The notes under the pieces were generated by a model. The model worked only from the letters and a program-made list of their open reading frames with translations. It was not told where the DNA came from and made no database searches. Below are positions 2,551 to 56,953 of a DNA stretch of 64,000 nucleotides, piece by piece. The first letter of the stretch is position 1; each line of letters opens with the position of its first letter. This DNA comes from Paramoeba atlantica (taxonomy: Eukaryota; Protista; Discosea), in assembly GCA_977017575.1 (NCBI GenBank), contig CDRNVI010000063.1, positions 434,001-498,000 of the forward strand, in the 5' to 3' direction. The position numbers were made by a program, and so were the translations under genes.

Positions 2551-2715
2551 TTTATAAAAAAGGTGTTCTTTATAAAAAAGGTGTTCTTTATAAAAAAGGT
2601 GTTCTTTATAAAAAAGGTGTTCTTTATAAAAAAGGTGTTCTTTATAAAAAAGGTGTTCTTTATAAAAAAGGTGTTCTTTATAAAAAAGGTGTTCTTTATA
2701 AAAAAGGTGTTCTTT
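2551..2715. repeat. 18-bp tandem array type 2 (TTTATAAAAAAGGTGTTC)n, about 9 units
   Basis: Read directly. Confidence 0.97.
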
Positions 2716-5595
2716 CGTCGACGGCCTTTGATCTGTGAAATGAACACTTGCGAGAACGAGGAATCCAAGGAAGAAAAGACCGATAAACGGGCCATTAAAA
2801 AAGCAACTCGACTAATGATAGAGGGGTCCACAAAAAAAACAACGCAAATACTAGATCGTAAGTTCGCTGCACATCTACTTTCGGACGAAGAAACTTTACA
2901 AAAACTCCAAGATCTCCACCCGCAAAGCTCTTATGAATTCGATCTTCCCAGAGACGCTCCGATTCTCGGTGGTCTGCATCCCACTGAGTTACGTTCCGCC
3001 GGGTTACGCCTCGCCAAGGGAGCCAGCCCGGAGCCCACGGGAATGACAGACACGATCGTCCGTATCCTGATAGGAAATCCACGCCGCGGGGCATAATAAA
3101 TAACATGTATCGAATAGTAAACAAAGAAACAACTAAAATGTATCTGATTGCTCACAAGCCCTATTTCCCAATCTCAAAACATAACATCAACATTAAACTG
3201 TAAATAATATGTTCTCACGACAATTTTAGGCCTGCAAACATATATGTCACTGTCACTCTGTTAACGGGGTTCCCCCCACCGGAACCCTCGACCAACCTGC
3301 CACAAAAACTTTTGAAACGTAAGTAGAAAAAATAGCCTACCAAGAATATAAAGAATGAATAATGAAATTACAACACTATTTGAAACAAATCATAATTTGA
3401 AGAAATTATGTGCCCCGAAGGGCCAAGCAGGCATAAACAACTCCCTGCCCCGCGGCTAAATTTCCAAACGTGGACTATTAATGATCCCGTCTGTTGTGCG
3501 AATTTCTGTCATATGCTCATGGACCTTGTGAATGGCTTTCTCTCAAAAGACGTAATGCGGCGTTTAACGAGATCAAGACTCATTGCAATACCCAAGACCA
3601 ATGGGGGTGTCCGTCCAGTGGCAGTTGGGGAAGTGATAATGAAATTAGCAGGTTTGGTTTTGGTGCAACGTTTCGAATTCACTCTCCAACCACTTTTCGC
3701 TCCGATACAACAGGGAGTGATGGCGAAGTCCGGCTGCGAAAGGGTTGTGCATACATTGAACTCCCTATACAAGGAAGGTTCATGTATCATGTCAATCAAC
3801 GTCAAGAACGCGTTCAACGCCCCATCAAGAAATGACCTGGCCAGAGCAGTTTACGGATTGGCGACACTTCGACCATTCCAAAGATTCTTTCATGCCGAGT
3901 ACGCAGCTCCTTCAGAACTTCTCTATTACGGTCACGAAGGCAAGCACGTCGGTACTATTCTAAGTACGAACGGAGTAAGACAAGGCTCGACCCTTTCGAC
4001 GGTGTACTTCTGCGCGTTGCTTCAACCAGTGTTGGAAACTCTGGCGGCAAAGTATCCGAAAGTTAAAATAAATGCCTATGTTGACGACATCACACTAGCT
4101 TCTCACAACCCCGAAGAGTTGACAGATGCTTTCCTATACCTCCGCGAGCTACTGACGCATCAAAGCTTATTTGTGGCGAGCCACAAATGCATATGGTTCG
4201 GTGGGAAACAGAAAAAGCGTATGCCAAACGCACTTCGAGACGCGGGAGTCATTGGGGAAGCCGAGGCGTTCAAAGTACTGGGAGCGTTCGTTGGAGATGA
4301 TAAAGTTGTGAGTCAATGTTTGTCGAAGTCGCTGGAGAAACACAACGACATATTCCGTCAACTCAAGCGCATGGGCCCTAGCAACCTGTCATGCAAGATT
4401 CTTTCCAAGTGTGTCAATGTAAGACAAACATATCATATGCGTGTTCACAATCCCGCCGCCTCCGAAAATTCAGCGGAAGGCTTTGACACGGAAACTGAGA
4501 AAGTGGTCGAATCGTGGTTCGGAGAATTAGATGAAGAGCAAATGTCGCTAATACGCATGCCAACGAAGAAAGGGGGATTAGGATTAACAGCATGCGCAAC
4601 GACAAGAAGGGCAGCATATGAATCATCCAGGTACTCGGTTCTTGAGCAACAAGTGAACAACTCAGCTCGGACCGACAACCTCGAAATACAAAGCGCCCAG
4701 GACCAGCAGCACACAAGTATTCCCCCCAATGACATAACAACTACGGCAGCCCAGATACACTCTAGAACCTGGAAGAAATTGACAAGCGGCACATCGGACA
4801 TGTCCAAAATACTCGAGAAAGTAGAATTCAAAGGAAACAGCGAGTGGGTACTGTCGGACACAAAATTAATTCCACCCCACCTCTTCCGACTTGTCATAAT
4901 GCCGAGACTTGGAATTGCACATCCGGATTTGCCCTCCCATATTCTTTGTCCAGGGTGCAAAATTCTTCTGAATTATGACAACATGATACGTCATATTACA
5001 GGATGCTCAAAATGCGCTGGTTTAAACGCAACGGTAAAGCACAGCACCCTGGTCAACTTCTTATACGAACTGTGTTTAAAAACCGGCATTCCGTGTGAAA
5101 AGGAGCCTCGAACTTTTTCCACCATCTCGTTGCACACAATGCAACGAGATGGTTGAACCAAACCACAAACGGACCCACGAACGAGCATGTGGAGGCAGAT
5201 CTTTCCGTCGGTCCGGGCCAGATCTCTTTATCTATTGGGCAAGCGGGGAAATATATTACGACCTAACCGTTGTACATGAACTCGCTCCCTCCAATCTTGC
5301 GACGAAATGCGCCCAGCTGTTTCGAGAGGCCTCCAAGCGCAAACACGACACATACGTGAAAACTGGAAAAATAACGGAAAGCTCATTTCAATGTATCCCC
5401 ATCCTGTCAGGAGGCGCGATGCACATGAACACGCAATCCCTGCTCTCAGCACTTGCGGACGCTAGCGGAAGTCAGCGACAACAAATCAAATCAGAGTTCC
5501 AGATATTGTTACAGGAGCTGAATGGTGCAGTGGCGTACTCACAACTTAGGAAATACATATCACGGGACAGAAAAGAAAGTGAACTCGCCTTTTGA
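2716..5595 (+). pseudogene. 5'-truncated CRE-clade non-LTR retrotransposon (family A), broken by a 407-bp insert and a frameshift near 5120
   Basis: RT motifs GVRQGSTLS and YVDDITL; CPGC...H..GC knuckle; RLE motif SGPDL...YYDLTVVH; starts directly after the type-2 array. Confidence 0.9.
3074..3480 (-). mobile_element. ~400-bp structured non-coding insertion element, copy 1 (antisense to its host ORF)
   Basis: Ends GAAATCCACG...CGTGGACTATTA; removal restores ATA G|AT GAT CCC (RILIDDPVCC); no target duplication. Confidence 0.85.
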
Positions 5596-5759
5596 GACGA
5601 TTGCGTCAGACGAAGAAACGAAGACAAAGATGTCAGGCTATAGGACTCTAGGAAGTGTAATTTGGCCAGTGTCTGGTGACATAAAACTTTAAAACAAAGT
5701 AAAATTGATAATTTGATTGTTTTTAACATTGAGAAGAAAAAGTAATGGTTTGTGCTTAC

Positions 5760-5907
5760 TTTTGCGTGAAACGAAAGTCAACAGAATCAAATCTTTAGGG
5801 GAGGCTATCGAATCTATCGAAGAAAAGCAAAATGAAGCATCCGAATCGATAGAAGTGAGTCGTGATTTAGATCCTCTTCCAAGATTCGCGCAAAAAAAAA
5901 AAAAAAT
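5760..5907 (+). pseudogene. Short fragment of a family-A CRE ORF followed by an A-tract
   Basis: DLDPLPRFAQ matches the DLDPLPPMAQ segment of family-A ORFs. Confidence 0.5.
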
Positions 5908-5943
5908 ATTAAGATCCTACAACGGAGAGGTTCATCGTGTGAT

Positions 5944-6036
5944 GTGTTCTTTATAAAAAAGGTGTTCTTTATAAAAAAAGGTGTTCTTTATAAAAAAGGT
6001 GTTCTTTATAAAAAAGGTGTTCTTTATAAAAAAGGT
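5944..6036. repeat. 18-bp tandem array type 2, about 5 units
   Basis: Read directly. Confidence 0.95.
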
Positions 6037-6048
6037 GGATATAATCTT

Positions 6049-6081
6049 CAACAAGGTACAGAAACTGTATCTTTATCGTTA
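6049..6081 (-). other. Spliced-leader exon retrocopy (33 nt)
   Basis: TAACGATAAAGATACAGTTTCTGTACCTTGTTG; resembles the kinetoplastid mini-exon (AACTAACG...CAGTTTCTGTAC...TTG); not followed by a GT donor. Confidence 0.85.
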
Positions 6082-6498
6082 AATATAAGGGTGTCCACGC
6101 GGGGACCACAAAATTTTCGTACGGATATAATCGGCTAGGGGGGACCGATGAGTACTCATCGTAAGTTGTAGACTTTCGATGAGTCTCACGGAAAGTTGTA
6201 GACTTTCGATGAGTACTCATCGAAGGTGTTTTTGACTTTTTCAATTTTTCGTATTTTATCAATTTTTTGCGAAGGGCCAACTGTGAGCGTAGCCCTGGGA
6301 CATAATAATATTTTTTGGCGACCCGTGCGCTCCATGCGGAGGTGGTGGATATTGGCACGGCGGGCGGAGGAGGAGTTGGCATCACGGCCTTCTTTTTCCG
6401 GCGGGCAGGAGGGAGCGGCAAAATCTCAGGACTACTCCTGATTCTTTTGCTTGGGAGCGTGTGAACACTCCCATGAAAGGTAAAAAAAAGTAAATAAT

Positions 6499-6531
6499 CA
6501 ACAAGGTACAGAAACTGTATCTTTATCGTTA
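6499..6531 (-). other. Spliced-leader exon retrocopy (33 nt) heading a degenerate ORF (MGVFTRSQAK...)
   Basis: Identical 33-mer, then a pyrimidine-rich UTR and an ATG. Confidence 0.85.
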
Positions 6532-7068
6532 AAGATTATTGTACGTGTGCTTCTCTCTAGATTCGTGGGAAGCAATTTGCGAAGCTCAACTACCTTGATA
6601 ACAAATTTTAGTACCCATTTTGGCCGCGCGGGGGCCCCCGCGTGAGCGGGGGTGCGCGCGGCCGCGAAACGGCGAGGGCCCGCGTGAGCGGGCCTGAGCC
6701 GTACCCCGCGTAGGATTCCCCTGTGCGTCGTTAGTGGGAAGCAATTTGCGAAGCTCACTGAATTTCGTGGTTTTCGCTACGCAGGCGTTGTCAACGTATG
6801 TAGTGAAGTGTAGGATACTGAACGCACGGAAAAGGAAAATCAAAAAAAAATCTTGAGTGTTCCACAAAAGTCCTTGACTTCCACCGTAAATTTCCGTTCG
6901 TTGAGAACTCAACGAACGTACCCCCAACCCGTCTACCCCTTCCGCAGGATTGTCCAGAGGCAAGGCCCAACTGTGAGCTTAGCCCTGTTGTTTTTTGTAA
7001 GACGGATTCTTCAGCTATTTTTCCGGTTTTAACGTAGGTATCATGTTTCCGTTACGTTGATGGCCACC

Positions 7069-7766
7069 ACCCTTTCTTTTGTTAAGACCCTTTCTTTTGT
7101 TAAGACCCTTTCTTTTGTTAAGACCCTTTCTTTTGTTAAGACCCTTTCTTTTGTTAAGACCCTTTCTTTTGTTAAGACCCTTTCTTTTGTTAAGACCCTT
7201 TCTTTTGTTAAGACCCTTTCTTTTGTTAAGACCCTTTCTTTTGTTAAGACCCTTTCTTTTGTTAAGACCCTTTCTTTTGTTAAGACCCTTTCTTTTGTTA
7301 AGACCCTTTCTTTTGTTAAGACCCTTTCTTTTGTTAAGACCCTTTCTTTTGTTAAGACCCTTTCTTTTGTTAAGACCCTTTCTTTTGTTAAGACCCTTTC
7401 TTTTGTTAAGACCCTTTCTTTTGTTAAGACCCTTTCTTTTGTTAAGACCCTTTCTTTTGTTAAGACCCTTTCTTTTGTTAAGACCCTTTCTTTTGTTAAG
7501 ACCCTTTCTTTTGTTAAGACCCTTTCTTTTGTTAAGACCCTTTCTTTTGTTAAGACCCTTTCTTTTGTTAAGACCCTTTCTTTTGTTAAGACCCTTTCTT
7601 TTGTTAAGACCCTTTCTTTTGTTAAGACCCTTTCTTTTGTTAAGACCCTTTCTTTTGTTAAGACCCTTTCTTTTGTTAAGACCCTTTCTTTTGTTAAGAC
7701 CCTTTCTTTTGTTAAGACCCTTTCTTTTGTTAAGACCCTTTCTTTTGTTAAGACCCTTTCTTTTGT
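7069..7766. repeat. 18-bp tandem array type 1 (GTTAAGACCCTTTCTTTT)n, about 39 units
   Basis: Read directly. Confidence 0.98.
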
Positions 7767-8289
7767 AATTTCGATTCCGCATCATTGTGAATGAAAGCGA
7801 AGTAACACAAATTTAAAACCAGAATGTTATTGGTGAACTCGTGACGTAAGAAATATAAGGATACTATAAACTATTCTATTTAGGATTCGCGAAAGAATGT
7901 TACATAGTAGAAAACAAAACTAACTTGCTAAAAGAACTCACGACTGGGTGTCGGCGGCACGTGGCGTGGGGAGGCGGGCGGGAAACTTTTTCTTTTCAAA
8001 TAGCGGAAATGTTCTAACACGTACAACAATAATGATAATAATGCCATATGTTTTCGATATAAGACGTAATCAAAATTACTTTCTCAAGTTTACATAATTT
8101 CGATTCCGCATCATTGTGAATGAAAGCGAAGTAACACAAATTTAAAACCAGAATGTTATTGGTGAACTCGTGACGTAAGAAATATAAGGATACTATAAAC
8201 TATTCTATTTAGGATTCGCGAAAGAATGTTACATAGTAGAAAACAAAACTAACTTGCTAAAAGAACTCACGACTGGGTGTCGGCGGCAC
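7767..8289. repeat. B2-spacer-A2-B1 block of split direct repeats (contains the circle junction at 8095/8096)
   Basis: Exact duplications of 194 bp and 110 bp. Confidence 0.93.
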
Positions 8290-11271
8290 CCACCCAGTCG
8301 CAAGTTTGTGTACTCCTCCATCTCGCCAAGTATCATAGCGATTACGACTCCACGCATCAGCCTGATTTTCTTGCGTGGTGACATACTCCGGAAAGACCAG
8401 CATATGATTCAGGTGTAAATAAGACAGGATTCGGGTTAGTACATCGGATATATTGTACGAATCCGCCCATCGTTTCCTCATGGCGGCTTCAACACTTGTG
8501 TTATCCACACGAAGTCGTATAAATTTTACCTGGTTCCAATGCTCTGCAAAGGCTATCAGAGCATTTTCGATCGCCAAGGCTTCCCCGTGATTAATCTCAA
8601 TATCTTTGTCCCAAGCTGCCCCGGTGCCATAAACAGTACCGTCGGGTAGAAAAAGAACTGCACCCCAACCATCTAGGGAAGCGTCGGTGTAGAGAGTAGC
8701 AAATTTTGACGACTCAGCCACGGAATACAGTTGAGGTTGATTATTTTTCACCTCTTGAATCCACCGGTTGAGTTGTACGCTCACCACATACGACAATTTT
8801 ACGGTATCATGCTCTCGTATCATACCTTTGTTTAGCTTCGATATTTGACGTCGAATGAATTTTATAGCCCAGTAGTATCTGGGCATAATAACACCAAGAA
8901 CTGCAGATGCATATACGAGCCTGGCACATAATGATTCATACGCATGTAAGGGAGCGTGTGAAGCAATTTCGTGAGGTATTTTTTTGATGAAGCGATCGCT
9001 CAAATTATAGCACTTTTTGTCGTGATCATAGCGAACACCGAGAAAATCGTACTTCGTTGCATTACACGTATCTTCTTCTTTGAAAGTCATATGTGTCATG
9101 TTTGCTCGCTCGTCAACGAAACGTTCGTAGGCGGTCACTTCGATTTTCGATCCGCAGTATCTTATACCGTCAAGGTAAACATCAAGTTGGTCCGTGCGAA
9201 AACCCTGAGAATCCGCGGTTTGTGCGCTGTAATTCGCGTGCCCCGCAAGAGTTGCCGTTAGAATTTGTTGGATTTCCGGTGCGCATGCATGCCCCATGGG
9301 CATTCGCGTCATTTCGTATGTTGCAGCGCCATAACAAAACCGATAGTAGGCCCGTGTTGCTGCTGGTAGTTCGACTTGAAAGAAACCGGCCTTTAAATCT
9401 CTTTTCATACCCCTTTCGTAACGTACTCTGTTTACGTAAGATACTGGTTGTCCGATCGGGACATCGGCTTTGTATTTATGTTCTAAAGCTAGATTATGAC
9501 TTTTTGGCCAGCATATAAATCGACGTCGGGCACCACTGTCTCTTTCTTCAAAAGTCGTAAACGGTATTATCTGAGCCTTCGTTGGATGGCTTTCCAATTC
9601 TTCATAAGTCACGCGCCGTATTATTTCCGACTTCAGAAGTTTACTGATATCATTTTGTGACAGAGTTGAGCTCTTTACGGAACACAAATTTACATTTTTC
9701 TCTAAACACTGAGGATTGGTTAGTAACTTCCATACCTCGTCAAAACGACACTTCATTTCCGGTTGCATCCAGCTTCTTATGCGAGCAATATCCAAAGAAG
9801 GCACTGATGGGGCATGAAGAGGAAGTTTCATTTCGTCAGGGGTGGGTGGCTGCATCATTCGATGGGGGCGAGACCATACTCTCCGGGTGGAAAATTGGGC
9901 ATCTTTGTCTAGTGTATCCCAGCTTAAATTTAGATCGGTGAGAAATCGAGATTTCAAAGGAGCCTTGTCGTATTCTGCGTTCCTAAAGCTCGCGCGGTGT
10001 GCTCGTTCACCCCCGAGTATCGTAGCAGGGAAGGGAGCTGGCGGTGGTTCGCGATACGCATCACCTCCTCCAATGTGATACGTTTGCCGGCTACATGCTC
10101 CATCAACTGGTGAATAGCCCCCCGTTTGATGGAATGGGAGGAGTATCCTCTGCCCAGATGGCGCCGAAAGAAACGAGTGATTTCCATTGAGCTCAGGGTA
10201 GAAATATGAGTGTTGGGGGAAAGGCAACGTAGGTATTGATATATTTGGTTCGTGTAGGCCCCTTCTATAACTACCATTGTGTCCGGGCGAAAAGGGTGAG
10301 CTTTGGTTGTTTTCGTCTTGTTCCCCCAGTACAGGATGATGCAGTCCGGTCGTGCCACTATGAAATCCCTTCGTTTCAAAAGCGCGACTTCCCCCGCACG
10401 AGATGCGGTTTTGTAGGCAATCAGTACTGTAGCTGCCATTTCTGACGTCATAAATGGTAGCAACTTGTTCAGTTGTGCCTTGGTCAAAGGCTGGGCTTGT
10501 TGAAATGGAATTTGCGATCCGCGCCGAATTAGTGACTTTAGCAGAAGACGGGAATGCGTTGCTAGCTTCCCGGACTGTACCATCAATGCTATAAGGTGCT
10601 TCAGATACGTTTCTTTCGTTTGGAGTGACAAGGACATGTCGTTTATTAGTTTTACGACATCGTCGTCGAATAATTTGAGACGGCGGGAATGCAACATTCG
10701 TAGCAGGCGGGCACGCGTTAACCATGTTGTCTGACACCACATTGGAACTAATGCTTGTTGTGTCGTCCATTTTCTTATGCCCATGACTTCCATTACAAAT
10801 TGAACTTCCTCGCTGTAAGATTTTCTTTGGAATGCTGCTCTTGCTAGGGTGCGACGTTGCGGTAAAGAAACTAGCTTGCTTTTTTGACTTAATGTAATTG
10901 TCTTCAATTGTCCGTGAACCGGAGTTATCCTCTTTTCGCTCTGGAGTTTTATTGGTTGAGATGGATTTGTACTTATTTTGATCGTTTTTACCGAACGGGT
11001 GCGACGTTGCGGTAGAGAAACTAACTTGCTTTTTTGACTTAATGTAATTTGATGGTCGGAATGAAACTTGCTGGACTGTGATTGTTTTAAAACTTTTTTC
11101 ATATTCTGGTTTTGATTTATTGTAGAAAGAACTTTTAAACCTATTTTTTACTGGCTTTTGCCACGGGGGCGGACTTCGGAGAGTCAACTTCGCGGGCCAG
11201 ACCCCCTCCCTTTTTCTTTTCAAATAGCGGAAATGTTCTAACACGTACAACAATAATGATAATAATGCCAT
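8257..11271 (-). CDS. Reverse transcriptase-RNase H polyprotein of YR-2 (N-terminal part overlaps the YR ORF)
   Basis: DLKAGFFQV, MPMGHACAP, VYLDGI (RT); YTDASLDGWGAV, EALAI, VDNTS, NQADAWSR (DIRS-type RNase H). Confidence 0.92.
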   Translation of the reverse strand: MALLSLLLYVLEHFRYLKRKREGVWPAKLTLRSPPPWQKPVKNRFKSSFYNKSKPEYEKSFKTITVQQVSFRPSNYIKSKKQVSFSTATSHPFGKNDQNKYKSISTNKTPERKEDNSGSRTIEDNYIKSKKQASFFTATSHPSKSSIPKKILQRGSSICNGSHGHKKMDDTTSISSNVVSDNMVNACPPATNVAFPPSQIIRRRCRKTNKRHVLVTPNERNVSEAPYSIDGTVREASNAFPSSAKVTNSARIANSISTSPAFDQGTTEQVATIYDVRNGSYSTDCLQNRISCGGSRAFETKGFHSGTTGLHHPVLGEQDENNQSSPFSPGHNGSYRRGLHEPNISIPTLPFPQHSYFYPELNGNHSFLSAPSGQRILLPFHQTGGYSPVDGACSRQTYHIGGGDAYREPPPAPFPATILGGERAHRASFRNAEYDKAPLKSRFLTDLNLSWDTLDKDAQFSTRRVWSRPHRMMQPPTPDEMKLPLHAPSVPSLDIARIRSWMQPEMKCRFDEVWKLLTNPQCLEKNVNLCSVKSSTLSQNDISKLLKSEIIRRVTYEELESHPTKAQIIPFTTFEERDSGARRRFICWPKSHNLALEHKYKADVPIGQPVSYVNRVRYERGMKRDLKAGFFQVELPAATRAYYRFCYGAATYEMTRMPMGHACAPEIQQILTATLAGHANYSAQTADSQGFRTDQLDVYLDGIRYCGSKIEVTAYERFVDERANMTHMTFKEEDTCNATKYDFLGVRYDHDKKCYNLSDRFIKKIPHEIASHAPLHAYESLCARLVYASAVLGVIMPRYYWAIKFIRRQISKLNKGMIREHDTVKLSYVVSVQLNRWIQEVKNNQPQLYSVAESSKFATLYTDASLDGWGAVLFLPDGTVYGTGAAWDKDIEINHGEALAIENALIAFAEHWNQVKFIRLRVDNTSVEAAMRKRWADSYNISDVLTRILSYLHLNHMLVFPEYVTTQENQADAWSRNRYDTWRDGGVHKLATGWVPPTPSREFF
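9954..11102 (-). CDS. Tyrosine recombinase of YR-2
   Basis: YKTASRAGE (R), YSSHSIKRGA (HxxR), ANHRQLPSLLRY (H...Y); true start may be internal. Confidence 0.9.
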   Translation of the reverse strand: MKKVLKQSQSSKFHSDHQITLSQKSKLVSLPQRRTRSVKTIKISTNPSQPIKLQSEKRITPVHGQLKTITLSQKSKLVSLPQRRTLARAAFQRKSYSEEVQFVMEVMGIRKWTTQQALVPMWCQTTWLTRARLLRMLHSRRLKLFDDDVVKLINDMSLSLQTKETYLKHLIALMVQSGKLATHSRLLLKSLIRRGSQIPFQQAQPLTKAQLNKLLPFMTSEMAATVLIAYKTASRAGEVALLKRRDFIVARPDCIILYWGNKTKTTKAHPFRPDTMVVIEGAYTNQIYQYLRCLSPNTHISTLSSMEITRFFRRHLGRGYSSHSIKRGAIHQLMEHVAGKRITLEEVMRIANHRQLPSLLRYSGVNEHTARALGTQNTTRLL

Positions 11272-11319
11272 ATGTTTTCGATATAAGACGTAATCAAAAT
11301 TACTTTCTCAAGTTTACAT

Positions 11320-18234: not shown

Positions 18235-18569
18235 GCTGCCTCCAGTGACTTTACATTCTTTGCTTAATAAAATTCACAAGCTTAAGAACACACTTTTTAT
18301 AAAGAACACCTACCAAGAATATAAAGAATGAATAATGAGTAAACTATTAAAACAAGCAAAATTCACTCCAAACAAACAAAATTCACTCCTTGGTTCCTCC
18401 TATTGTAAAGCATATTGAGAAAAGTACAGACATTAACAGCAGCAATACTCTCCGTGAGCTCTTTATCTGAAATAAGTTAATATCAACTTAGATCATGAGA
18501 TGATATCAACGTAGATGACGGGGAATTTTATCAAATCGAATAGAGGTTGTAAGTGAAAGGAAATTCTGA

Positions 18570-21500
18570 TTAGTGTTCAAGTCCTCCGAGCCACTGAATT
18601 GGTGGAAAGTATTGTCGGAGTTGCGTGGCAATTGTGTACGCGTTCATCTTCTCTATTTCAAGTTGGAACGCTTCTTTGACATCCTTCACGTTTTGTTGTG
18701 ACCGTTGTGCGAGCGAGACAATGAGAGTTTTCGTGTTGTTGTGCAACTGTCCTAATTCGGTCATTGCCAAGCAGCTGAAACTTTCTTTCGGTATGCCCCC
18801 TTGTACAACGTATTTTTTGTGCTTGCGCTCAAGGGCATTTTGGATTAACTGCTCGACGGAGGTTTTGGCATAGCTCGGGGCACAACTGTGAACTACGGTG
18901 ACATCGTAGAGAATTTCTCCGAGATGGGACCACATGATACCGAGATCAGGGCCTGATCGCATACGTCTTGCTCTGCATGGGTGATGTTCAGAGAGCTCTT
19001 CGGATATGGTGGCCTTACATTTGGTGCAGAAGAATGATGAATGTACTCGAGGTTCTATAACATGGGGCACCCCTGCTTTGGCACACAATTCACCTAGGAA
19101 ATCCACGCCGAGGGGGCTCCATGAAACTGATAAGTAACAAACAAATATAAGTAAATACATATGACTAATATAATCACACTTCCAAATCGTCCCAAAATCA
19201 AAGAACACATAATACGATATATAGATAGAATTCACATGCACAAACATAGTTCAAAAGAAAGCCTGCATAGAACCAATAATAATGTGTCACGTTGTTAACG
19301 GGGTTCCCCCCCACCGGAACCCTCGGCCAAATGGCTGGGGGCTTGGTGGGTGGGCACAAAAACTTAAAGTGAAGTAAAATAACAACCTAACAAGGATATA
19401 TAAGATAATAGTAAATACCCATCCCATGTAAAATTCTGAATACAAATCATAATTCGAAGAAACTATGTGCCCCGAAGGGCCAGCAGGCAAATATATAACA
19501 GCCCCTCGGCTAAATTTCAAAACGTGGACTATTAGAAACGGACTAATCGTGTGTGCTTCTTCGTTGCATTTATCCCACAGCATTGTGTACATCCAGGAAT
19601 GTGCTGGAAGATGGTATCAGAAGAGTATTCTGTCAGGCATCCCGGGCATACCACACTCTTAGGCATATTTTCTGGCACTATTCCCAGGCGCATCATTATA
19701 CAGAAACGGAAGAGGTACGGATTGATGTAGTTGCTGGTTGATTGCAGGTGGTGAAATGATGCGGATCCTCGCTCCATTAGTTCTTTGAGGCGCATGTCCT
19801 TTCTCAGCTCGGTTGCAAATCGTTTTTGTTCAGATCGTATTGCTTTCATGACTAATCGCTTGGAAGTATCATTCTTCTGGCTGTCACGTTCGTTCAGAGC
19901 CCTGTTTCGCTTGGATCCCGCTATGACCACCGGAGCGTTATTGGTTTTGGATTGCTCTTCAATGGCTTTGCGAGACGCTTGGAAAAAGTGCTTTTGCTTC
20001 AAACATGACGGAGTAAGTCCGAGTCCGCCGAGATATTGCGGAAGTGTGGCGAGTTTTGCAGTAGGGCCCGTTGCATTAAACCAATGCTGAATAATACTGC
20101 CTACTTCCGCGTCGAACTGCTGGGCGATTTCAAGGGATGCTTCGGGCTTGTGTACTCGGAGGTGATAGTCTTGACGGGGGATGGCGCACCGATTCAGAAT
20201 TGCGAGGGATAGGTTGCTCGGTCCCATGAGTCGAAGACGGCGAAAGAGACACTTGTGTTTGTCCATCTTTTTCTTTAGGCATTCACTTACCATCTCGTCC
20301 TGTCCGATATATGCACCTAGAATTTTCACTGTTTCTTGCGGGCAGGCTACCCCCATCGCTTGCAGAGTTTGGGGCGTCCATGGAGTGTCTGTTTTCTTGA
20401 ACCATTCGCATTTCTGGAAGTTCATTTCCAGTCCCAGAAGTCGTGAAGATTCGTGCAGGTGTAGAAAGGCGGTCTGCAAGGATAGGGGATTTGTTGATGA
20501 CAAGGTTATGTCGTCCATGTACGCTCGAACCGTTACATCTGGAAAGGACTCTTCGATTTCTTTGAGCGAATCCTGTATCAGGGCACAGAAGTATAGTGAC
20601 GAAAGCGCTGAGCCCTGTCGAACGCCAGAAGTGCTCTTCACGATCGAATGGAGCGAGTTATTGGCAAAGAAGAGCAGATCAGACGAGTCCCCGTACTCAA
20701 GATTAAAAATCCGCATGAAAGGTTTGAAGATGCCGTCTTTCTTGAGTGCTTCGAAGATTGCTTGACGCGTGGGGGTATTGTAGGCATTCTTATAATCGAT
20801 CGCCAAGATGGCGTGTCCCTTGTCATATTCATCGAGCACCTCGTGAACAATTCCCTCGCACGCATTCTTTTGGAGGATCCCTCTTTGGACAGGCTGGAAA
20901 AATTTCTTCAGTTTCTCTTCGTTCCTGTTTAGAAGGATCGAGCCACATACTTTCAATAGAGTCTCCCCAATTGCAATCGGTCGTATTCCGTTCTGCGGTT
21001 TGTTGATGGCCATTAGTCGACATCGTGTCAGTCTGTCACGCACCGACGATGCGATCTCCCCGTTCACTACATCGCGTAACATATGGCAGAGCGCGGTGCT
21101 GGATTCCTCGTCATCCGCAAGTAGGCGCAACATGGCTTCACTCAATCCCGTAGGGCCCGGGGAAGCTCCCGGAGCCAGTTTCTCTATCGCGGCCCGAAGT
21201 TCGTGTTTTTCGATGATTCCTGTTCGGGGGTCTGCGTCCGTCTGAGCTTGTGGGCGCTCTCCATCGGGATGTAGACTCTTGAGCTCCGCTACTTTCTCCT
21301 CAACGCTAAGGTTCGAGTCAAAATATACGTTGTCGAGGATACGCGTAGCTTTGCTTAGGTTACCAGCCCTAGCCGTTCGAAGCGCACTGCGGATTGATCG
21401 GCGGTCGACTTCACGTTCAAGTTTCTCGTCAGGTGAGGAGAACGCCGGCTCCTCGTTGCGCAATTTGTTTGGCACATGATACTTCCGCTGGATCGCTTGT

Positions 21501-22260
21501 CGCACAGTGGTGAGTGAGTCGCGGGGTGCGTTTAGAAACTTGTGCCAGACGGATGTTTTCTCTGTTATAAGCTTGAGCGTGGGATATCCTCGCAGGATTG
21601 ATCTAAAGATTGCTATGACGTGAGCGGCAAACGTGGGGTCGATGTGGGCGAGTGGGGGAAGAGGCTCCAAGTCGCATCCCGTGTCACAATCTTGTGTTTC
21701 TTCGATATCCAAAAATGGCGTTTGTGTCACAATACGGTTGAGCTTTACCACCCGTAATCGGAAGATGTTAATCTTGTGAGATGCAGGTAGATATAGAAAT
21801 CCTGATGGACCTGGCTGATGCTGCGGTGTGTAGGAAATCTTTACCCTGATTGCACCTTTTCTAGAATGTCGCGTAACAACTTCTCCAATCGACTGATAAA
21901 TCTCACTGCTGTGGCGGAATTTCCAATGTAGCTCGCAAGTAGTTCCTTTTCCCCAGTCGTTGATTATCTTTAGTATTTGGTCCGGAGCTTTCATTGTTTC
22001 TTCGGCGACCTCGGCCACCCGATCGTCCTCCGAGATGTCTGATCCTGATGCAGATGAGCTCTCCGATCCTTCGTCATGTGACATGTCCGCTTGTCCGAGG
22101 TTCGCCTTCGTTAGATCAGAGCTACGGAGTATCACTTTTACCTTTTTCGGAGTTTTCTTCAGTCGTGTCTCTTTTCTGATCTTAATTTTCAAGGATGACT
22201 CTCCAGTTTGACTTCTTCGTAGAATTTCATTTCTCCGAACACTGGCAAAAGCGGTTTCCT
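18570..22260 (-). pseudogene. CRE-clade non-LTR element (family A), ORF split by a 437-bp insert
   Basis: ORF 19532..22192 (GVRQGSALSS, AYMDDITL) continues in 18570..19097 (RSGPDLGIMW...LYDVTVVH) once the insert is removed. Confidence 0.92.
19098..19534 (-). mobile_element. ~400-bp structured non-coding insertion element, copy 2 (sense to its host)
   Basis: TAATAGTCCACG...CGTGGATTTC; removal gives CGT TTC|CTA GGT (RFLG). Confidence 0.88.
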
Positions 22261-22519
22261 CGTCTTTCGTGTTGAATCAAAGTTATAAATGAACAAAAAC
22301 AGAAACGTTCTCACGATTCTGCATAGGCGGAAGAGGGGGAAGAGTAGTAGTATGAATGAGAAACCTAAACAACGGTACGATCATCAATTTTTTTTTTTTT
22401 TTTTTTTACGTTCAAGACTGAAAAATTCTTTCTTCTAAAATATATTCTATTTTTTTTTTCTGAGCCTTCTCCCAAAGATCGTTCGTATTATCCTAAATCT
22501 CGCAGGCATTCTAAACACG

Positions 22520-24306
22520 GATAATCGTTGTGAATAATAATAAGAACTTTTAAGAGCTTTTCTAATGTGCGAACTTGTTGGTCGACTCACTGACGCAGTC
22601 CACCAATCCAATGTGCTTCTGGAATATACTCGCGGAGCTGCGATACAATAGTATACGCTGCTAGCTTTTCTATCTCGAGTTGGAAGGCCTCACGTACGTC
22701 TTCGTACTTTTGTTTGGCTCGTTGGGATAATGCCTTGAGGAGGGTTTTGGTGTCGTTGTGCAGAAGACCGCAGTCAGAGGCGGCCAGGCAACGAAAAGAG
22801 TCGCTTTCTACGCCTTTCTCCGTAACGTACTTCTTGAATTTCTTGTCGAGCACGTGCTGCATCAGCGCTGTACTTGTTTGTTTGGCATAGCTGCTGCAAC
22901 AAGTGTGAACAACGGTAAAATCATACAGGACCTCCCCCATGTGGGGCCACATAATAGCAAGATCAGGACCGGATCGGATTCTGCGGGCTTTGCAAGGATG
23001 ATGTTCAGCTACTTCCGCTGAGATGGAACACTTGCACTTAGTACAGAAAAACGAAGAATGGATGCGCGGTTAGATAATACAAGGGAGACCAGCTTTGGAG
23101 CACAAATCTGCGAGGTACCTCACTATGTGTGAGTGCTTTCTGGTGCAATTCATGCCCGAGCACCGGGAGCATCCTGCGACGTGTGGTATAATGCTGGTAG
23201 GAGATTCATGGCCACAGCATCCAGGGCATATAACATCGGCCGGTGCGTTATGTAATCCGATGCCCAAACGCATCATCAAAGTGTATCGGAAGAGGTACGG
23301 GTTTACATAATTGCTGGTGCTTTCTAAATGCATGTTTGATTCCTTTGTACGCTTCAATAAAAGTCCCATGTGAGAATCCTTCTGCAGCTCAGTTATCTGT
23401 TTATCGTGTTCTGCACTTAGCTTCTTTTTCAATAGCTTGCGCGCTGCCTCTCCTCGACTTTGCGGTTGTTTCACAGCTTTTTCGCTGCCTTTCTGATCTA
23501 CCGGAGCGTTATTGGGTTTAAGGTGCTCATCAATAGATTTGCTGGCAGTTTCGAAGAAATGTTTTTGCTTCAGAGTCGAGGAAATTAAGCCTAGGCCACC
23601 GAGTTTCTGTGGTAGAGCGGCGAGTTTCAGGGCGTTTGCGTCTGCTCCACTCCACTTTTCTAGAACTTTGTTTACTTGGTTCTCGAAGGATTGTGCTAGT
23701 TGGAAAGTAGCGCCTGGCCGATGTACTCGTAGATGGTAATCGTGCCGTGGAATCGTACAACGGCGGAGAATGGCAAGAGACAAGTTACTGGGACCCATAA
23801 GCAACAACCTGCGGAATAGGCACTTGTGTTTCTCCATTTTCTTGATCAGCAGATTTTCCACGACTTGGTCTGTACCTACGTATGCGCCTAAGACTTTTAT
23901 CGCATCACTGCAAAAGTTTACTCCAAGTTTTTCCAACGGAGGAGGCTTCGTGTTGTGGCGGCCGTGGTCTGACGTTGGGTTTTTCTCGATGCTTTGCGCT
24001 TTGTGTTCCATCTTCTTTTGCCAGTTGAGGGGAATATGCTGTGGAATGGGGGTTGTGTACATGAGGTCGTCGTACGTGCTAGCGTCTTGGATGAGTTTCT
24101 TGTTTGCCTCAAACTGGTCCCATGATCCAATCTCGAGTCTATTCGCTTGTTCCGTAAAGTTCAAGTTGTGCTCCTTTACGCCAGTGGACCTCACTGCTGC
24201 AGTGTTCTGCTGCTGATGCGACGGCGTGCCTTGCGCCGCCCTCGGGGGAGGTTCTGACATAAAAGAAAGAAAAGCAAAGTAGTAAAAATTCAACAAGGTA
24301 CAGAAA
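22520..24306 (-). pseudogene. Chimeric SL-capped retrocopy: LsmAD-like N-terminus fused to the 3' half of the 30475-34078 element; one nonsense change at 23070
   Basis: 22520-23946 is near-identical to 30475-31901; 23947-24260 is unrelated to it and encodes WDQFEANKKLIQDASTYDDLMYTT; a GAA in the intact copy is TAA here. Confidence 0.85.
24291..24306 (-). other. 5'-truncated SL exon copy (16 nt)
   Basis: TTTCTGTACCTTGTTG directly before the UTR and the ATG at 24260. Confidence 0.75.
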
Positions 24307-24308
24307 AG

Positions 24309-34083: not shown

Positions 34084-34214
34084 GTTAAGACCCTTTCTTT
34101 TGTTAAGACCCTTTCTTTTGTTAAGACCCTTTCTTTTGTTAAGACCCTTTCTTTTGTTAAGACCCTTTCTTTTGTTAAGACCCTTTCTTTTGTTAAGACC
34201 CTTTCTTTTGTTAA
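34084..34214. repeat. Type-1 18-bp array, about 7 units
   Basis: Read directly. Confidence 0.96.
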
Positions 34215-35086: not shown

Positions 35087-35088
<2 letters not shown>

Positions 35089-47256: not shown

Positions 47257-47352
47257 TTTCTTTTGTTAAGACCCTTTCTTTTGTTAAGACCCTTTCTTTT
47301 GTTAAGACCCTTTCTTTTGTTAAGACCCTTTCTTTTGTTAAGACCCTTTCTT
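47257..47352. repeat. Type-1 18-bp array, about 5 units
   Basis: Read directly. Confidence 0.95.
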
Positions 47353-47481
47353 ACGTTATCCCTCCGGGTGTAGATCCTTAAGCTTTTTTTTTTTTTCGTA
47401 TTCCTAATTTATCCTCCTACCTTTTCCACTTCTTCCTATTACTACCTTATCCACCAAATAAGTCCAGACTCGGACTCGACT

Positions 47482-50097
47482 CTAATAAGCATACTCATCT
47501 TTCGGATCCGGTAAGTAGCTACGCAATTGCGCCTGAACTATCGCTCCATTCAATTCCTGTTGAAGAAGCACAAAATCATTCAGAATCGCCTTGGGTTCGC
47601 GGTAGACCTTTTCCGCCAGGAGCTGTAGTAGAGATTTTGTGTTATTGTGGAGAGCCCCGCAGGACAATATAGGGAGGCATTGAAATTGATCATTTCGCAA
47701 CATAGTTGATTTTACATATTTCGCATGCTTCCGAGCGATGGCGTCCTGCAACGCCTTTTGTGCTGATACCCTTTCATAAGAAGGTGATAGCTCATGTACC
47801 ACGGTTAGGTCATAGTACGTCGCGCCAGAAGCCCAATATATCACAAGGTCAGGGCCTGATCGGTGCAATGCTGCACCCCGACATAATTTCGCGTGTTCGA
47901 TCTTGTTTTCTTCGCTTAACACTTGTGAACATGCAGAGCAAGTGTAAGAGGTAAATTCTCTGGGCTCACGGGCGCATGGCAGACCTGCTTTCAGACATAA
48001 CTCATAAATATATCTCGTCAGAGAATTATGTTTGGTTGTCGCGTTAATTCCAGAACAGCGTACGCATCCAGGTATGTGGGTCATAGCGCTAGCTGCATCT
48101 AATAGAGTCCTGCAACCTGGGCACAGTAGAGAGTCGGGAAGTTTGGGATGACGAATACCAAGCCTTGGCATCACAGAAAGCGTAAATTGCATTGGAGGGA
48201 TGTATCTTTCGGTGGCGTGTATCCATTGGTAGCTTCCTTTTCTGGACGTCGCTGATATAATTCTACCGATTTTGGGATCTTTACACAGCTCTTCTTTCAC
48301 TTGTTTGTGCAACTTGAGATCTACTGCCCCTTCTTCGTCCGGCACTACCCTCGAGATCGACATCCCCAAGTGTCTCCCATCCTGAGCTGAATATACTTTT
48401 CGGCGCTCTAAGGATGCGTGACGAGAAGCTGCATATGAATTTTCCCGTAGTGCATAAGTTGATGAAAGGCCGAAACCTCCCATTTTCAGCGGCATTCTGG
48501 CCCACTTCAGTTGCATATCCGATAGTTTGCCAAACCACGACTTTAAGACTCTATCGACCTCCGTGTCGAATTCCGACGCAATTTTTTCGGTAGCTTGAGG
48601 CTTGTGGACTCTAATGTGAAACCTATGACGAACGTTAACGCTCTTGGACAAAATCAGGGATGAAAAATTGCTCGCCCCCATTTTTTGGAGCCGGCGAAAT
48701 ATATTTTTGTGCTTCTCCAGCTTTTGTATCAAAAGTTCGCTCACAGGCATATCTTCTCCGATAAAGGCACCTAATATTTTTATTGCAATCGTTTCCTTCT
48801 TCACTCCCGCTTGCAATAAATCTTCAGGTATGTCAGATCCGCTCTTTCCTTGAAAAAATATACATTTGTTGCGCGCCAGTTGGACCTTTCTTTGTTCTAG
48901 CAGTCCCTGCAGTCGGAAAAACGCTTTGGATAGCGCTTCACTATCATCTGACGCCATACTAATGTCGTCTATGTATGCCAACACTTTAATATTTGGGAAT
49001 TCATTAGCAATTGTGGCCAGAATCGGCTGTATGAAAGCACAGAAAAGAAGTGTTGACATTGGCGACCCTTGACGAACTCCTGTTGCGCTACTCACGGTGC
49101 CGCACATCCTTCCATGTACTCCATAGTATAGTAATTCTGAGGGCTCTGAATATTCGGCTGCAAAGAGACGTTGGAACGGGCGTAATGTTGCGTAGCCGAA
49201 AACGCACTTTGCAATTTCGTCTCGATTCGGAGAATTAAAAGCATTTCTCAGATCAATAGTTACTATGGCGTTGCCTTTATTGTAAAGATCGTGAAGATTA
49301 TGCACTACCTGTTCGCATCCGGATCTCGCCAGCACTCCGAACTGCCATGGCTCGAAAAGAGTGGCCAATGAATGCTCGTAACGCTGAAGAAGTACCACTT
49401 CCGCTAGCTTTAAGAAGATTTCTCCCACAGCTACCGGACGAACCCCTCCGTCAACTTTGGGAATCGCTATTAGCCTGGCCCTCTTCAGACGTACCATGAC
49501 TGACTTTTCAAGACGTCCATTTATGAGGTCCGCCATCATGTGGCATAGTGCAGTGCAAGAAATCTCGTCGTCTAATAATAACCTCACAATGCAATCAGTC
49601 GTGCCTGTCGGCCCCGGCGCTGCACCCTTGGCCAAATTACGACCTGCTGCCCGTAGTTCCTCGGTAGTTAATGCTGCTATGCATGGTGCATCTGATGGTA
49701 AATTGAAAGTGCAATCAGCGGTGGGGTGCAAATCTCTAAGCTTTGATAGCACTTCCTCATCGGAAAGTTTTGTCGGGCACGTCTGCTGATCAAGAACTTT
49801 TGTTGCTTTCGTTGTGCACCCTTCAAGCATAAGGCGCGTCGCCTTTTTAATAGCTCGCGCATCGATCGATTCCTCACTCATTTGATCCTCGTGTTCCATG
49901 TTTTCATTGAAAGGACGCCGCCGTCTGCGCTTAAGACTCGCTTCTCGAACCGCTGTCAACGAGAACTTCATAGCCGACAGGACTTTGTGCCAGATAATCC
50001 GTCGATACTCGTAGGTGCTGTCTGAGTATTCTCTCATTATGTCACGGTAAATCGCGACCGCGCAGGGGGCGAATTCTGGTTCTATCGTTTTGGCTTT
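47482..50097 (-). mobile_element. 5'-truncated family-A CRE element with an open RT-RLE frame, starting at a type-1 array
   Basis: GVRQGSPMS, AYIDDISM, SGPDLVIYW...YYDLTVVH; the frame stays open upstream of 50037 (KTIEPEFAPCAVAIYRDIM) up to the array. Confidence 0.9.
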
Positions 50098-50320
50098 CTT
50101 TTGTTAAGACCCTTTCTTTTGTTAAGACCCTTTCTTTTGTTAAGACCCTTTCTTTTGTTAAGACCCTTTCTTTTGTTAAGACCCTTTCTTTTGTTAAGAC
50201 CCTTTCTTTTGTTAAGACCCTTTCTTTTGTTAAGACCCTTTCTTTTGTTAAGACCCTTTCTTTTGTTAAGACCCTTTCTTTTGTTAAGACCCTTTCTTTT
50301 GTTAAGACCCTTTCTTTTGT
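50094..50320. repeat. Type-1 18-bp array, about 12 units
   Basis: Read directly. Confidence 0.96.
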
Positions 50321-50643
50321 TTTGTGTCCCTTGCCAGACTGTGAAATCCAGCGAGTTCGGGTCTTAATGTCTGCGTTGTAAAATGCTTGCCCGAATTCGT
50401 GTGATCTTTGTTGCTATTACAATAGATTTCAAAATATCTGCATAATCATCGAGTATGATGCGCGCTGTCTAAACTAAAAACACCATGAACTAACGACTGG
50501 GAAGTCTCCATTCGCATAATCCGCGGTTTGGCCTATTCGTGATGTGGATAGATGTTTCAGTGCGCTAAGGAGAAATCTGATAGTGATCTTAGTAATGATA
50601 AAATCTTGTAATAATAACATCTTGTAATATGAGATGACCTGTT

Positions 50644-52108: not shown

Positions 52109-52146
52109 ATCTACGGGCGGCTCTTTTTTTTTTTTTTTTTTTTTTT

Positions 52147-55100: not shown

Positions 55101-55900
55101 AGACGGCAGGGGTGTTTTTCTTGTAGCTTAGAGAACGTGTCATCATCGTCCGGAGCCATTGGATCCGACGTTAGAGCAGCCAAGCCTCTGGAATATTCCC
55201 CCTGCCGGACGAGGAGTTCTGCCCTTAGTGTGGCTTTCTCTTCTTCATCACTAACCTCGGTAGGGGTTGCTTCCTTTTTGCGGTAGGTCGTCACGGCCTC
55301 TTTCCAGAGGAGGGAATAATCCAACGCAAGCCAACGCTGCATGCAACTGTAGGCGTGGGAAGCATATGCCATGTGGCCTTTGCCGCCTCCACGGCGTGGG
55401 GCGGGGAGGACACATTTGGGTAGCATGGCCAGCAAGGTCCACGACTGCAGTGAATTGTCTTTGACGGCGTTATCCATGGTCTCCGTAAGAATTTCACCCC
55501 ACAGCTGGCGGCATCGATGTGGTACGTCCTTGCATGTACTAAGCGGTAGCGAGCAGATAGTTGATAATGATGGAAGCTCAAACTGAGTGATTCCGGCTCT
55601 CCGTCCTGGGCTCTCCGCGTCAGGAAGGGTTTGCGCATGAAGCTCGGATGGCGGAGAGGCCATTGTTGCTTTGCAGCTATGGGAGTGATATGAACGTTTG
55701 TTTTTGTCGTAGTTTCGCCCGCAAGAAGAACAAAGGAAGCGACCTTCTACATCCCACCACTCTGCGGGAATGCTGCTTCCGTGCCGGCAAGCGACGTGGT
55801 TGTAAAAAGCTTGCCACGACCCGCCGTGTGGCAAGCTCCGCCATGAACATCCCTGAGCCGGGCACTGTCGAGAATCGTCTCCGTTGAGGGGAAAAGATGC
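52147..55900 (-). pseudogene. Family-B CRE element, 5'-truncated, with one in-frame TAA at 54923
   Basis: C2H2-like FYNHVACRH; GVQQGDPLGP, WYLDDG; CPMPKC...HVLSC; RPGDV...LDFAVTH; the two ORFs are in the same frame; conserved 3' UTR. Confidence 0.9.
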
Positions 55901-56059
55901 GCCTTGTGATTTTTTTTTTTTTTTTTTTTTTTTTAGTAAAAAAATATAGTTTTAATATACAATGTATAGTGTTTCAAAGTTTATAGTACTATAATAGTAC
56001 TATAAAATAGTTTTTATAGTTTTATGGACCTCTGCTATAAATCAGTATCAATTTTTTTT

Positions 56060-56520
56060 TTTTTTTTTTTTTTGGTTTGCAATTAATAAGGGGGGAGAAG
56101 TATGAATCGCGGCATTGCCTCTATATTTTGACCCAGTAGACGAACCAAGTACATAGTAGGTCCATTAGGGGGGTATATGAATTTGAAACAAGCAATCAAA
56201 TTAGCAATTCTTTTCTTTTCCACAGAAGTATATTTTCTTTTTCTTTTTTCTCAGCCCAAAACTAGCAATTCAATCTCCCCTAAGTATATACGACAAATAA
56301 GACACAGTAAAAATAAAAACAAGCAATCCAGACCCAATCCATTCGCGCGTTCCGGACCGGGTCTTTCGACCACTCCACGGCCTGACTTGTGAACCCTTCC
56401 CTTGCTATACGGGAGGGCGCAGGCGCGGGCCTGTGTCGACAGCGACACGGTCACGAAACAGGATGCTGGCCGACGGGGAGGAGATTCACTACCCGTGTAC
56501 TACCTCACTTGGGGTACCTA
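56060..56520 (-). mobile_element. Isolated family-B 3' UTR copy
   Basis: Matches 52160-52470 and 57680-57975; cut at the type-3 array. Confidence 0.85.
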
Positions 56521-56953
56521 GTTTTTTATTAAGACAACGTTTTTTATTAAGACAACGTTTTTTATTAAGACAACGTTTTTTATTAAGACAACGTTTTTTA
56601 TTAAGACAACGTTTTTTATTAAGACAACGTTTTTTATTAAGACAACGTTTTTTATTAAGACAACGTTTTTTATTAAGACAACGTTTTTTATTAAGACAAC
56701 GTTTTTTATTAAGACAACGTTTTTTATTAAGACAACGTTTTTTATTAAGACAACGTTTTTTATTAAGACAACGTTTTTTATTAAGACAACGTTTTTTATT
56801 AAGACAACGTTTTTTATTAAGACAACGTTTTTTATTAAGACAACGTTTTTTATTAAGACAACGTTTTTTATTAAGACAACGTTTTTTATTAAGACAACGT
56901 TTTTTATTAAGACAACGTTTTTTATTAAGACAACGTTTTTTATTAAGACAACG
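56521..56953. repeat. 18-bp tandem array type 3 (TTATTAAGACAACGTTTT)n, about 24 units
   Basis: Read directly. Confidence 0.97.

Follow-up and report, generated by a model that had tools for sequence, protein, structure and literature searches.

Satellite arrays and retroelements at the locus

The stretch of DNA studied here, called the window in what follows, is 64,000 nucleotides long and corresponds to positions 434001-498000 of contig C63 (679,992 bases) in the Paramoeba atlantica assembly (45.7 Mb in 248 contigs); other contigs are named in the same manner. Eleven arrays with a period of 18 bp were found in it with Tandem Repeats Finder (TRF), at 97-100% matches, and they are made of three types of unit, hereafter types 1, 2 and 3. 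Array limits and strands were set by an exact rotation scan with the three units. The arrays sum to 9.3 kb, i.e. 14.5% of the window, and they stand among retroelements: long interspersed nuclear elements (LINEs) of the restriction-like endonuclease (RLE) type, two elements with a tyrosine recombinase (YR-1 and YR-2) and retrocopies that begin with a spliced leader (Table 1). The Rfam scan of the window at gathering thresholds gave zero matches. As argued below, these arrays probably represent a retroelement-associated 18-bp satellite family that is passively colonised by mobile elements, in the retroelement islands of a spliced-leader, kinetoplastid-like protist.

Table 1. Arrays and retroelement features of the window. 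Positions count from the first base of the window; for arrays the strand is that of the A-rich reading. ORF, open reading frame; UTR, untranslated region.
Feature	Position	Strand	Size	Remarks
YR-1 coding part	241..2535	-		runs off window start
YR-1 tyrosine-recombinase-like ORF	1311-241	-		tblastn 32% identity over 268 aa to YR-2 recombinase ORF, E=2e-39
YR-1 gag-like ORF1	2535-1390	-		zinc knuckle, Pfam zf-CCHC E=2.7e-5
Type-2 array	2551-2715	+	9.2 units	
RLE-type LINE retrocopy	2716..5943	+		in type-2 array; body 2716-5891, A15 5892-5906, two bases, fragment 5909-5943
Type-2 array	5944-6037	+	5.2 units	
Spliced-leader head (6083-6049) and 11-nt spacer	6038..6083	-		leads into type-2 array
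Type-1 array	7069-7766	-	38.8 units	lower part of large array split by YR-2
YR-2 tyrosine-recombinase retroelement	7767..11318	-		inserted exactly into type-1 array
Type-1 array	11319-18198	-	382 units	13 variant units
Inverted type-1 piece	18195-18234	+	2.2 units, 40 bp	
Family-B RLE LINE	18235..24308	-		5'-truncated spliced-leader head at 24308, ORFs, 3' UTR units
Type-1 array	24309-24804	-	27.6 units	between A26 tail of upstream retrocopy and family-B head
Type-1 array	34084-34214	-	7.3 units	upstream of 5'-truncated spliced-leader head of another RLE LINE
Type-1 array	47257-47352	-	5.3 units	lower junction duplicated at C63:504851
Family-A RLE LINE	47353..50093	-		in type 1; 5' end full length; A13, two bases, 29-nt fragment 47353-47381
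Type-1 array	50094-50321	-	12.7 units	upstream of family-A LINE
Type-3 array	56521-56959	-	24.4 units	
Spliced-leader-to-poly(A) retrocopy	56960-57593	-		plus 7-nt type-3 remnant 57594-57600

An earlier note on this DNA, made from the sequence alone, had proposed that three different 18-bp satellites share one consensus, and this proposal was borne out. The three units agree at 11-14 of 18 bases when set in one phase (joint shuffle test, P ~0.004). A stronger argument than the shuffle test comes from intermediate types elsewhere in the genome, which tie the units into one family. Five further types, as well as variants of 17 and 19 bp, were recovered with a degenerate pattern and with TRF on 200 kb of contig C2, and the genome therefore holds at least eight related unit types besides these variants. 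Types 3 and 4 are identical at 16 of 18 bases, types 2 and 6 likewise, and types 5 and 7 at 15 of 18. The further types each match one of the three window units at 15-16 of 18 bases. At C2:613027-613134 a single array passes from another unit type into type 1. All unit types retain a TCTTnA block with an A run after it. Genome-wide counts, here and below, come from pattern matches, and the loci and flanks read are those among the matches listed. By this measure type 1 is represented by 2366 dimer occurrences and at least 43 kb, and free arrays exist for several sister types (1, 3 and 7).

Type-2 units in front of a gag-recombinase gene pair

Read on the minus strand, the beginning of the window presents a spliced-leader head, 11 nt, the type-2 array, 15 nt, the ATG of a gag-like ORF and an ORF homologous to the recombinase of YR-2. 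The array is in two pieces that have one unit, one orientation and one phase and are separated by a plus-strand LINE retrocopy: 2551-2715 is the proximal part of the leader, 15 nt from the ATG of ORF 2535-1390, and 5944-6037 is the distal part. In the sense strand of YR-1 the array is T-rich. That a spliced-leader head lies upstream of the type-2 array indicates that the array was in the mRNA, and the segment 6038-6083 marks where a trans-spliced YR-1 transcript, later reverse-copied into DNA, had its 5' end. The exact form of this head-spacer-array join is unique in the genome.

The arrangement between array and gene recurs in other copies. A query that covered three units, the 15 nt and the first part of the gag ORF gave matches over the full span in C69 (98%), C66 (94%) and C43 (86%), and about 12 more diverged loci match at 72-85% identity, which makes about 15 further loci in all. 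Gag and recombinase pairs were also found in C2 by tblastn. The size of the leader array differs from locus to locus, from about 14 units in the window to about 2.9 kb of 17-bp units at C66. Judged from its place in these copies, type 2 forms the array in the transcribed 5' leader of a lineage of gag-recombinase retroelements. Units at a fixed internal place in many copies, and in variable number, are what is looked for in a satellite derived from a retroelement, and both properties were found.

The units, in their T-rich reading, were also considered as trans-splice acceptors, with a pyrimidine run and AG behind it, which would turn leader arrays into arrays of acceptors, and this idea was dropped. 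None of the 100 leader heads (those among the matches listed) directly precedes a unit, which is a weak test, and in the YR-1 copy of the window the leader is joined upstream of the array.

Units in the 3' UTR of an RLE-type LINE

The ORFs of the retroelements carry a reverse transcriptase (RT), and in five of them a zinc knuckle about 290 aa behind the YxDD motif is followed by a GPD..YD.TVVH block. The best solved matches of the window LINEs are R2 proteins. From the motifs and the R2 match, which agree with each other and with the class proposed in the earlier note, it is reasonable to regard these LINEs as RLE-type elements with the order RT, CCHC knuckle and PD-(D/E)xK-type nuclease. A look-up of an ORF in public assemblies gave no record.

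In family B, 1.7 units resembling types 2 and 6 are present in the 3' UTR at about 18280-18311. In 16 of 16 copies they occupy the same place, behind one and the same upstream motif, and some copies (C4, C147) have one unit more. Beyond the units the family ends with a 45-nt terminal segment (18235-18279) that has no poly(A) and is common to about nine copies.

Two side observations concern this family. At C4:242800-267160, copies of family B are arranged in tandem with spacings of 4.9-5.4 kb and 8.9 kb, some of them with one extra unit in the 3' UTR. In the window, the 3' end of the family-B copy is joined to the 382-unit array through the 40 bp of inverted type 1 at 18195-18234, which gives a palindromic join. 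The inverted piece could have arisen during second-strand synthesis or through an inversion.

Arrays older than the elements that interrupt them

The same array type, in the same orientation, is present on both sides of the inserts 2716-5943, 7767-11318 and 47353-50093. The arrays must consequently pre-date these inserts. Moreover, the inserted LINE families have array-free copies elsewhere, so that the arrays are not the own leaders of those LINEs. The interrupted arrays are thus older than the interrupting elements.

Leaders had been considered in each case. Type 2 and type 1 as leaders of the LINEs at 2716 and 50093 were rejected, as other copies with 97-100% identity start without arrays: five other copies of the 2716 LINE match from base 2716 on with no type 2 in front, and three 100% identical family-A copies begin at the same base with no type 1 in front. 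Type 1 as leader of the sequence below 47257 was likewise rejected, being absent in eight other copies; the single sharer of the 47257 junction is a duplicate on the same contig.

The LINE copy at 2716-5943 was prematurely polyadenylated, since other copies run past 5891, and an apparent 9-bp duplication spans the insert. In this copy and in the family-A copy, the poly(A) tail is followed by two bases and a short fragment (5909-5943, 35 nt, and 47353-47381, 29 nt, respectively). Both fragments have the same start point, and elsewhere they are internal to the leaders of recombinase elements. For this reason the 29-35-nt piece between poly(A) and array was rejected as the own 3' end of the LINEs. 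Two bases and a fragment of this size after a poly(A) tail look like the product of a template jump that led from a short RNA with defined ends onto the tail.

YR-2 contains a Phage_integrase-like ORF at 9954-11102 (E=4.7e-5), a weak RT match and 195-bp direct repeats. As proposed in the earlier note, it is flanked by array on both sides, and type 1 continues across it in phase. At about 8077-8111 YR-2 contains a further copy of its ends, joined to each other, and this copy has no 18-bp unit.

The retrocopy 56960-57593 lies at the type-3 array, and the earlier claim that type 3 supplies its target-site duplication also stands: the same type-3 segment, from the A run to the TCTT block, is found on both sides. 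The remnant 57594-57600 is the upstream copy of this duplication, and leader head and unit overlap by 4 nt at their join. The array 56521-56959 meets the A25 tail of a retrocopy at its upper edge and a 5'-truncated copy of a common 3' cassette at its lower edge.

The earlier note had also placed the arrays at the 5' ends of retroelements. The junctions at 2716, 24308, 34083 and 50093 are real, but arrays abut 3' ends too, which is why we see them as split arrays rather than as marks of 5' ends.

Many copies begin with a spliced leader of 35-38 nt, whole or 5'-truncated, which is joined to the body exactly at the 3' end of the leader. The spliced-leader genes read on at this point into GTATGAG or GTACAT introns. 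The exact joins, together with the introns of the leader genes, identify the copies as reverse-transcribed trans-spliced mRNAs and not as insertions into leader genes. Tandem spliced-leader RNA genes were noticed at C11:838-6704 and C3:780715-782243, with GTTAAC before the exon and the GTATGAG intron after it. The heads of retrocopies show one to three variable bases at the positions that correspond to the start of the leader gene, which is what an RT stumbling at the modified cap would produce. Separately, one leader-headed element always has the same upstream sequence, at 6499-6560 as well as in nine or more loci elsewhere (C1:233010, C4:236122, C5:91376 and others); at loci of this sort the leader lies inside a larger repeated unit and not at a fresh insertion junction.

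Tests for dedicated targeting

Elements of RLE type are usually site-specific, and the arrays could be dedicated landing pads, i.e. the RLE LINEs, and perhaps the recombinase elements, would find their target through the conserved blocks of the unit and have a preferred cut site there. Several observations fit this proposal of the earlier note. One phase of type 1 is shared by the joins of two independent poly(A) tails, the A-rich strand is the sense strand for each of the eight array insertions of the window, and 6-14% of flanks lie in arrays, which account for well under 1% of the genome. Nevertheless, we regard dedicated landing pads as unlikely, on the following grounds.

Firstly, position within the unit is not fixed. 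Five 5' junctions were compared, namely the four above and the one at 47257, and they fall at five different phases. Among poly(A) tails that run into type 1 genome-wide, five loci have the A-rich strand as sense and are distributed over three phases, and in three more the orientation is reversed. The earlier note took the A-rich strand to be the sense strand of the element, which is correct for its four 5' junctions but not as a rule, the host element of type 2 being T-rich in sense and the genome-wide loci being divided five to three. In addition, a regional strand bias confounds the rule in the window, where 18 of the 19 poly(A) tails with at least 12 A are on the minus strand, whatever adjoins them. 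In C2 the preferred strand switches by region. The bias suggests that retrocopies are co-oriented with local transcription, or that the islands grow by stacking.

Secondly, the great majority of copies are outside arrays in every family tested. Only two of 33 family-B heads abut arrays; 17 of the 33 have a longer leader whose upstream flank was left unread, and the rest lie in varied DNA. For ends of the YR-2 type, two of about 14 independent flanks are 18-bp arrays. Two of the 100 leader heads abut an array, and about 40 are directly preceded by the poly(A) tail of another copy.

Head-to-tail stacking is by far the commonest situation upstream of leader-headed copies; examples within the window are 62131-62154, paired with 62094-62130, and 57601-57620, paired with 57559-57593.

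Thirdly, the frequency with which poly(A) tails touch arrays follows the coverage of the arrays. Such contacts are made by 3-5 of 19 tails in the window, where coverage is 14.5%, and by 1-3 of 53 tails in 200 kb of C2, where it is 2.4%. Eight poly(A) junctions in the at least 43 kb of type 1 are not above the 0.27 tails per kb counted in island DNA.

Finally, the elements that land in arrays belong to three mechanistically unrelated classes. The earlier statement that several classes of retroelement have done so is confirmed, with RLE LINEs, retrocopies and a recombinase element. A site-specific target would be indicated by most copies lying in it, at a fixed position and orientation within the unit. 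Here most copies lie outside the arrays and neither position nor orientation is fixed. The earlier note had itself named junctions not enriched at arrays and random positions within the unit as the outcome that would speak against site-specificity, and it is on this outcome that its landing-pad reading fails: phases vary, both orientations occur, the families are mostly elsewhere and insertion density is at the island background. No dedicated targeting is thus seen.

Position of the arrays in the chromosomes

Short, strand-asymmetric and near-perfect repeats beside retroelements resemble some unusual telomeres, and the earlier note had suggested that the arrays are non-canonical telomeric or subtelomeric repeats. 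This reading does not hold, and we give it next to no credit. The window is located 434-498 kb into a 680-kb contig, and the type-1 arrays of C2, C4, C9 and C12 are also contig-internal, hundreds of kb from the ends and in any case more than 100 kb. Another repeat occupies those contig ends that have a terminal repeat at all. Whereas four successive TTAGGG occur once in the genome, within an array of the seven-base repeat, ten successive TTTAGGG give 4320 matches, and they are present at the very start of C138 and C205 in C-rich orientation, as a left telomere should be. In C205:1-3000, the telomere consists of TTTAGGG with occasional TTAGGG and is followed by an A/G-rich tract and then by a 176-bp satellite; no 18-bp units adjoin it. 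This 176-bp satellite has a stretch with at most two edits from the spliced leader, found five times versus none in shuffles, which assigns the TTTAGGG-capped contig to the organism studied here. The genome has TTTAGGG as its telomere repeat, and the 18-bp arrays are neither terminal nor adjoining the telomere. The inherited blocks of variant units in the 382-unit array, described below, also differ from what is expected of a telomeric repeat, as duplicated variants favour unequal exchange over templated synthesis.

Concerning the contig ends in general, ten successive TTTAGGG were not seen in contigs 1-137 among the matches listed, which implies that most large contigs are uncapped. The starts of C13, C16 and C17 consist of 10-mers with purines only or pyrimidines only (kinds CCTCTTTCTT and AGAGGGAGGA), and are probably satellites at which the assembly stopped.

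A different chromosomal role could be imagined, in which the arrays are the satellite part of centromere-like or heterochromatic domains. It would be compatible with an origin from retroelements and would add a chromosomal function to it. Retrocopies with a spliced-leader head and arrays cluster in one broad island per large contig examined (462-651 kb in C2, 630-860 kb in C3, 206-495 kb in C4 and 245-397 kb in C9), and three array types come within 55 kb of each other in the window. On the other hand, C9 has clusters at both 281-301 kb and 555-563 kb, and C83 has them at five places over 150 kb. The evidence for such domains is this clustering in islands, and most contigs are not complete chromosomes. 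We therefore take a centromere-like function to be rather improbable.

Growth of the arrays

The 382-unit array records part of its own history. One pair of variant units recurs 95 units further on, and another variant recurs three times. Such duplicated patterns point to unequal exchange and not to templated addition of units. All six type-1 pieces are co-oriented, and the array 24309-24804 has a rare variant unit in common with the 382-unit array. Most simply, the type-1 pieces between 7069 and 50321 would be one ancestral array that was broken by at least five primary insertions.

We also examined whether the retroelement machinery may have made the arrays, either by abortive target-primed reverse transcription that duplicates the 15-18 nt between staggered nicks each time or by template switching of the RT, at the 5' ends of copies, onto array transcripts. 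One period is common to all types, a variable core lies between two conserved blocks, and these blocks resemble the ends of a capped and polyadenylated RNA as found in retrocopies, the one an A run, the other the bases with which the leader head begins. The one clean retrocopy inside an array has a duplication whose limits are the A run and the TCTT block. In two places, a short foreign RNA fragment stands between a poly(A) tail and an array, as in template jumping. The array edge at 34214/34215 is not a clean insertion. This edge, the template-jump pieces and the family-B end on inverted type 1 are the features that keep such a mechanism alive, and even so we hold it to be improbable. A series of intermediate events was not found, the arrays have the same type on both sides of inserts, as in pre-existing DNA, and the pattern of variant units is that of segmental duplication inside an array. 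Abortive events at the target would moreover leave unexplained the units at fixed internal places in two element families. Duplication lengths offer little help, because they are ambiguous modulo 18 in an 18-bp array and were given little weight accordingly; a scan of leader-headed retrocopies for target-site duplications found none beyond the one already known. The suggestion of the earlier note that elements amplified the arrays from their target sites has likewise found no positive evidence, and the variant duplications of the 382-unit array resemble the outcome of unequal exchange.

A more speculative idea, to which we accord a low probability, is that retrotransposition shaped the unit itself. 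The two blocks would mimic RNA ends and form a double docking site, and abortive 15-18-nt duplications would have set the period as the spacing of nicks. If true, the period of the satellite would record the distance between the staggered nicks of the endonuclease.

A probable case of a passively colonised satellite family

The reading that we prefer, a satellite family associated with retroelements and colonised passively, may be put together as follows. Some units are carried by elements, with type 2 in the leader of the gag-recombinase retroelement and one to three units of type 2/6 in the 3' UTR of an RLE LINE. Types 1 and 3 stand free in the window, and free arrays may grow and be homogenised by unequal exchange. 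The direction would have been from a repeat in an element UTR to a free array. Insertions into arrays would cost nothing and the islands would be under constant bombardment by retroelements, so that arrays are split repeatedly by unrelated elements such as RLE LINEs, retrocopies of capped polyadenylated RNAs and a recombinase element.

Four points weigh against this reading. Type 1, the most abundant type, has neither a carrier element nor a recurrent flank in the 274 kb read, and an element origin is, for this type, an extrapolation. The phase shared by two independent poly(A) tails is matched by the two full-length leader heads seen beside arrays, which both join at the TCTT block. Taken together these joins make some local preference in cutting or joining likely, and a mild one is possible. 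Thirdly, the share of flanks that lie in arrays is a clear excess, given that arrays make up maybe a few tenths of a percent of the genome. We attribute this excess to the islands and not to the arrays, the share of arrays having been measured in two islands. Lastly, the array edge at 34214/34215 cuts a small leader-headed element at its 3' side, where the copy 6338-6253 reads on, and simple insertion into an array does not explain this edge.

Comparison with known systems

Satellites that arose from tandem repeats in the UTRs of retrotransposons are known in plants, with Ogre elements in Lathyrus and other Fabeae (PMC7004042), and the centromeric retrotransposons of maize have likewise been a source of satellites (PMC3648361). 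As in plants, the repeats described here occupy a fixed untranslated place in the element, their copy number varies, and the same or sister units exist as long free arrays in chromatin rich in repeats. The units are, however, only 17-19 bp long, and their hosts are not long terminal repeat elements but a tyrosine-recombinase retroelement (5' leader) and an RLE LINE (3' UTR). The host organism is a spliced-leader protist, and no carrier was found for the most abundant type.

Mouse L1 elements have arrays of monomers of about 200 bp in their 5' UTR, which act as promoters and are of different types in different subfamilies. The YR-1 leader is similar in being a variable tandem array at the head of a retroelement. 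It differs by its 18-bp units and by the cap, which the mRNA receives by trans-splicing upstream of the array, whereas the mouse monomers serve as promoters.

CRE1/CRE2, SLACS and CZAR are inserted in spliced-leader genes and R2 in 28S rDNA, each with nearly all copies at one nucleotide position. The window LINEs, compared by motifs, have the same order of RT, zinc knuckle and PD..D-type nuclease as this group. Their copies are instead scattered and mostly abut poly(A) tails or other elements. The whole leader heads that they and other retrocopies bear come from trans-splicing, and are not the flanking halves of an interrupted leader gene as for CRE, SLACS or CZAR.

Retroelements of the TRAS/SART kind reside in the telomeric repeats of the silkworm. 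TATE elements of Leishmania braziliensis are inserted at one position in the telomeric hexamers (PMC6681497). The stacking of retroelements in tandem repeats, and YR-type elements in a kinetoplastid-like genome, are likenesses to these systems. In contrast to TATE, the repeats are not telomeric here, arrays are found at two of about 14 independent flanks for YR-2, and there is no single fixed position.

The analysis removes two tempting but wrong readings of this locus, an unusual telomere and a new site-specific target system. For annotation, it follows that junctions between arrays and elements in this genome are not evidence of target specificity; spliced-leader heads are a far commoner neighbour of poly(A) tails than 18-bp arrays are. 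What the locus offers instead is two unrelated classes of retroelement with 18-base arrays in their untranslated regions, and sister arrays that stand free in the retroelement islands and absorb insertions. The principle that repeats in retroelement UTRs seed satellites is already established in plants. Particular to this case are the very short units, their carriers, which are a recombinase retroelement and an RLE LINE, and a genome that uses trans-splicing, and the family may be viewed as a somewhat unusual case of a known principle.

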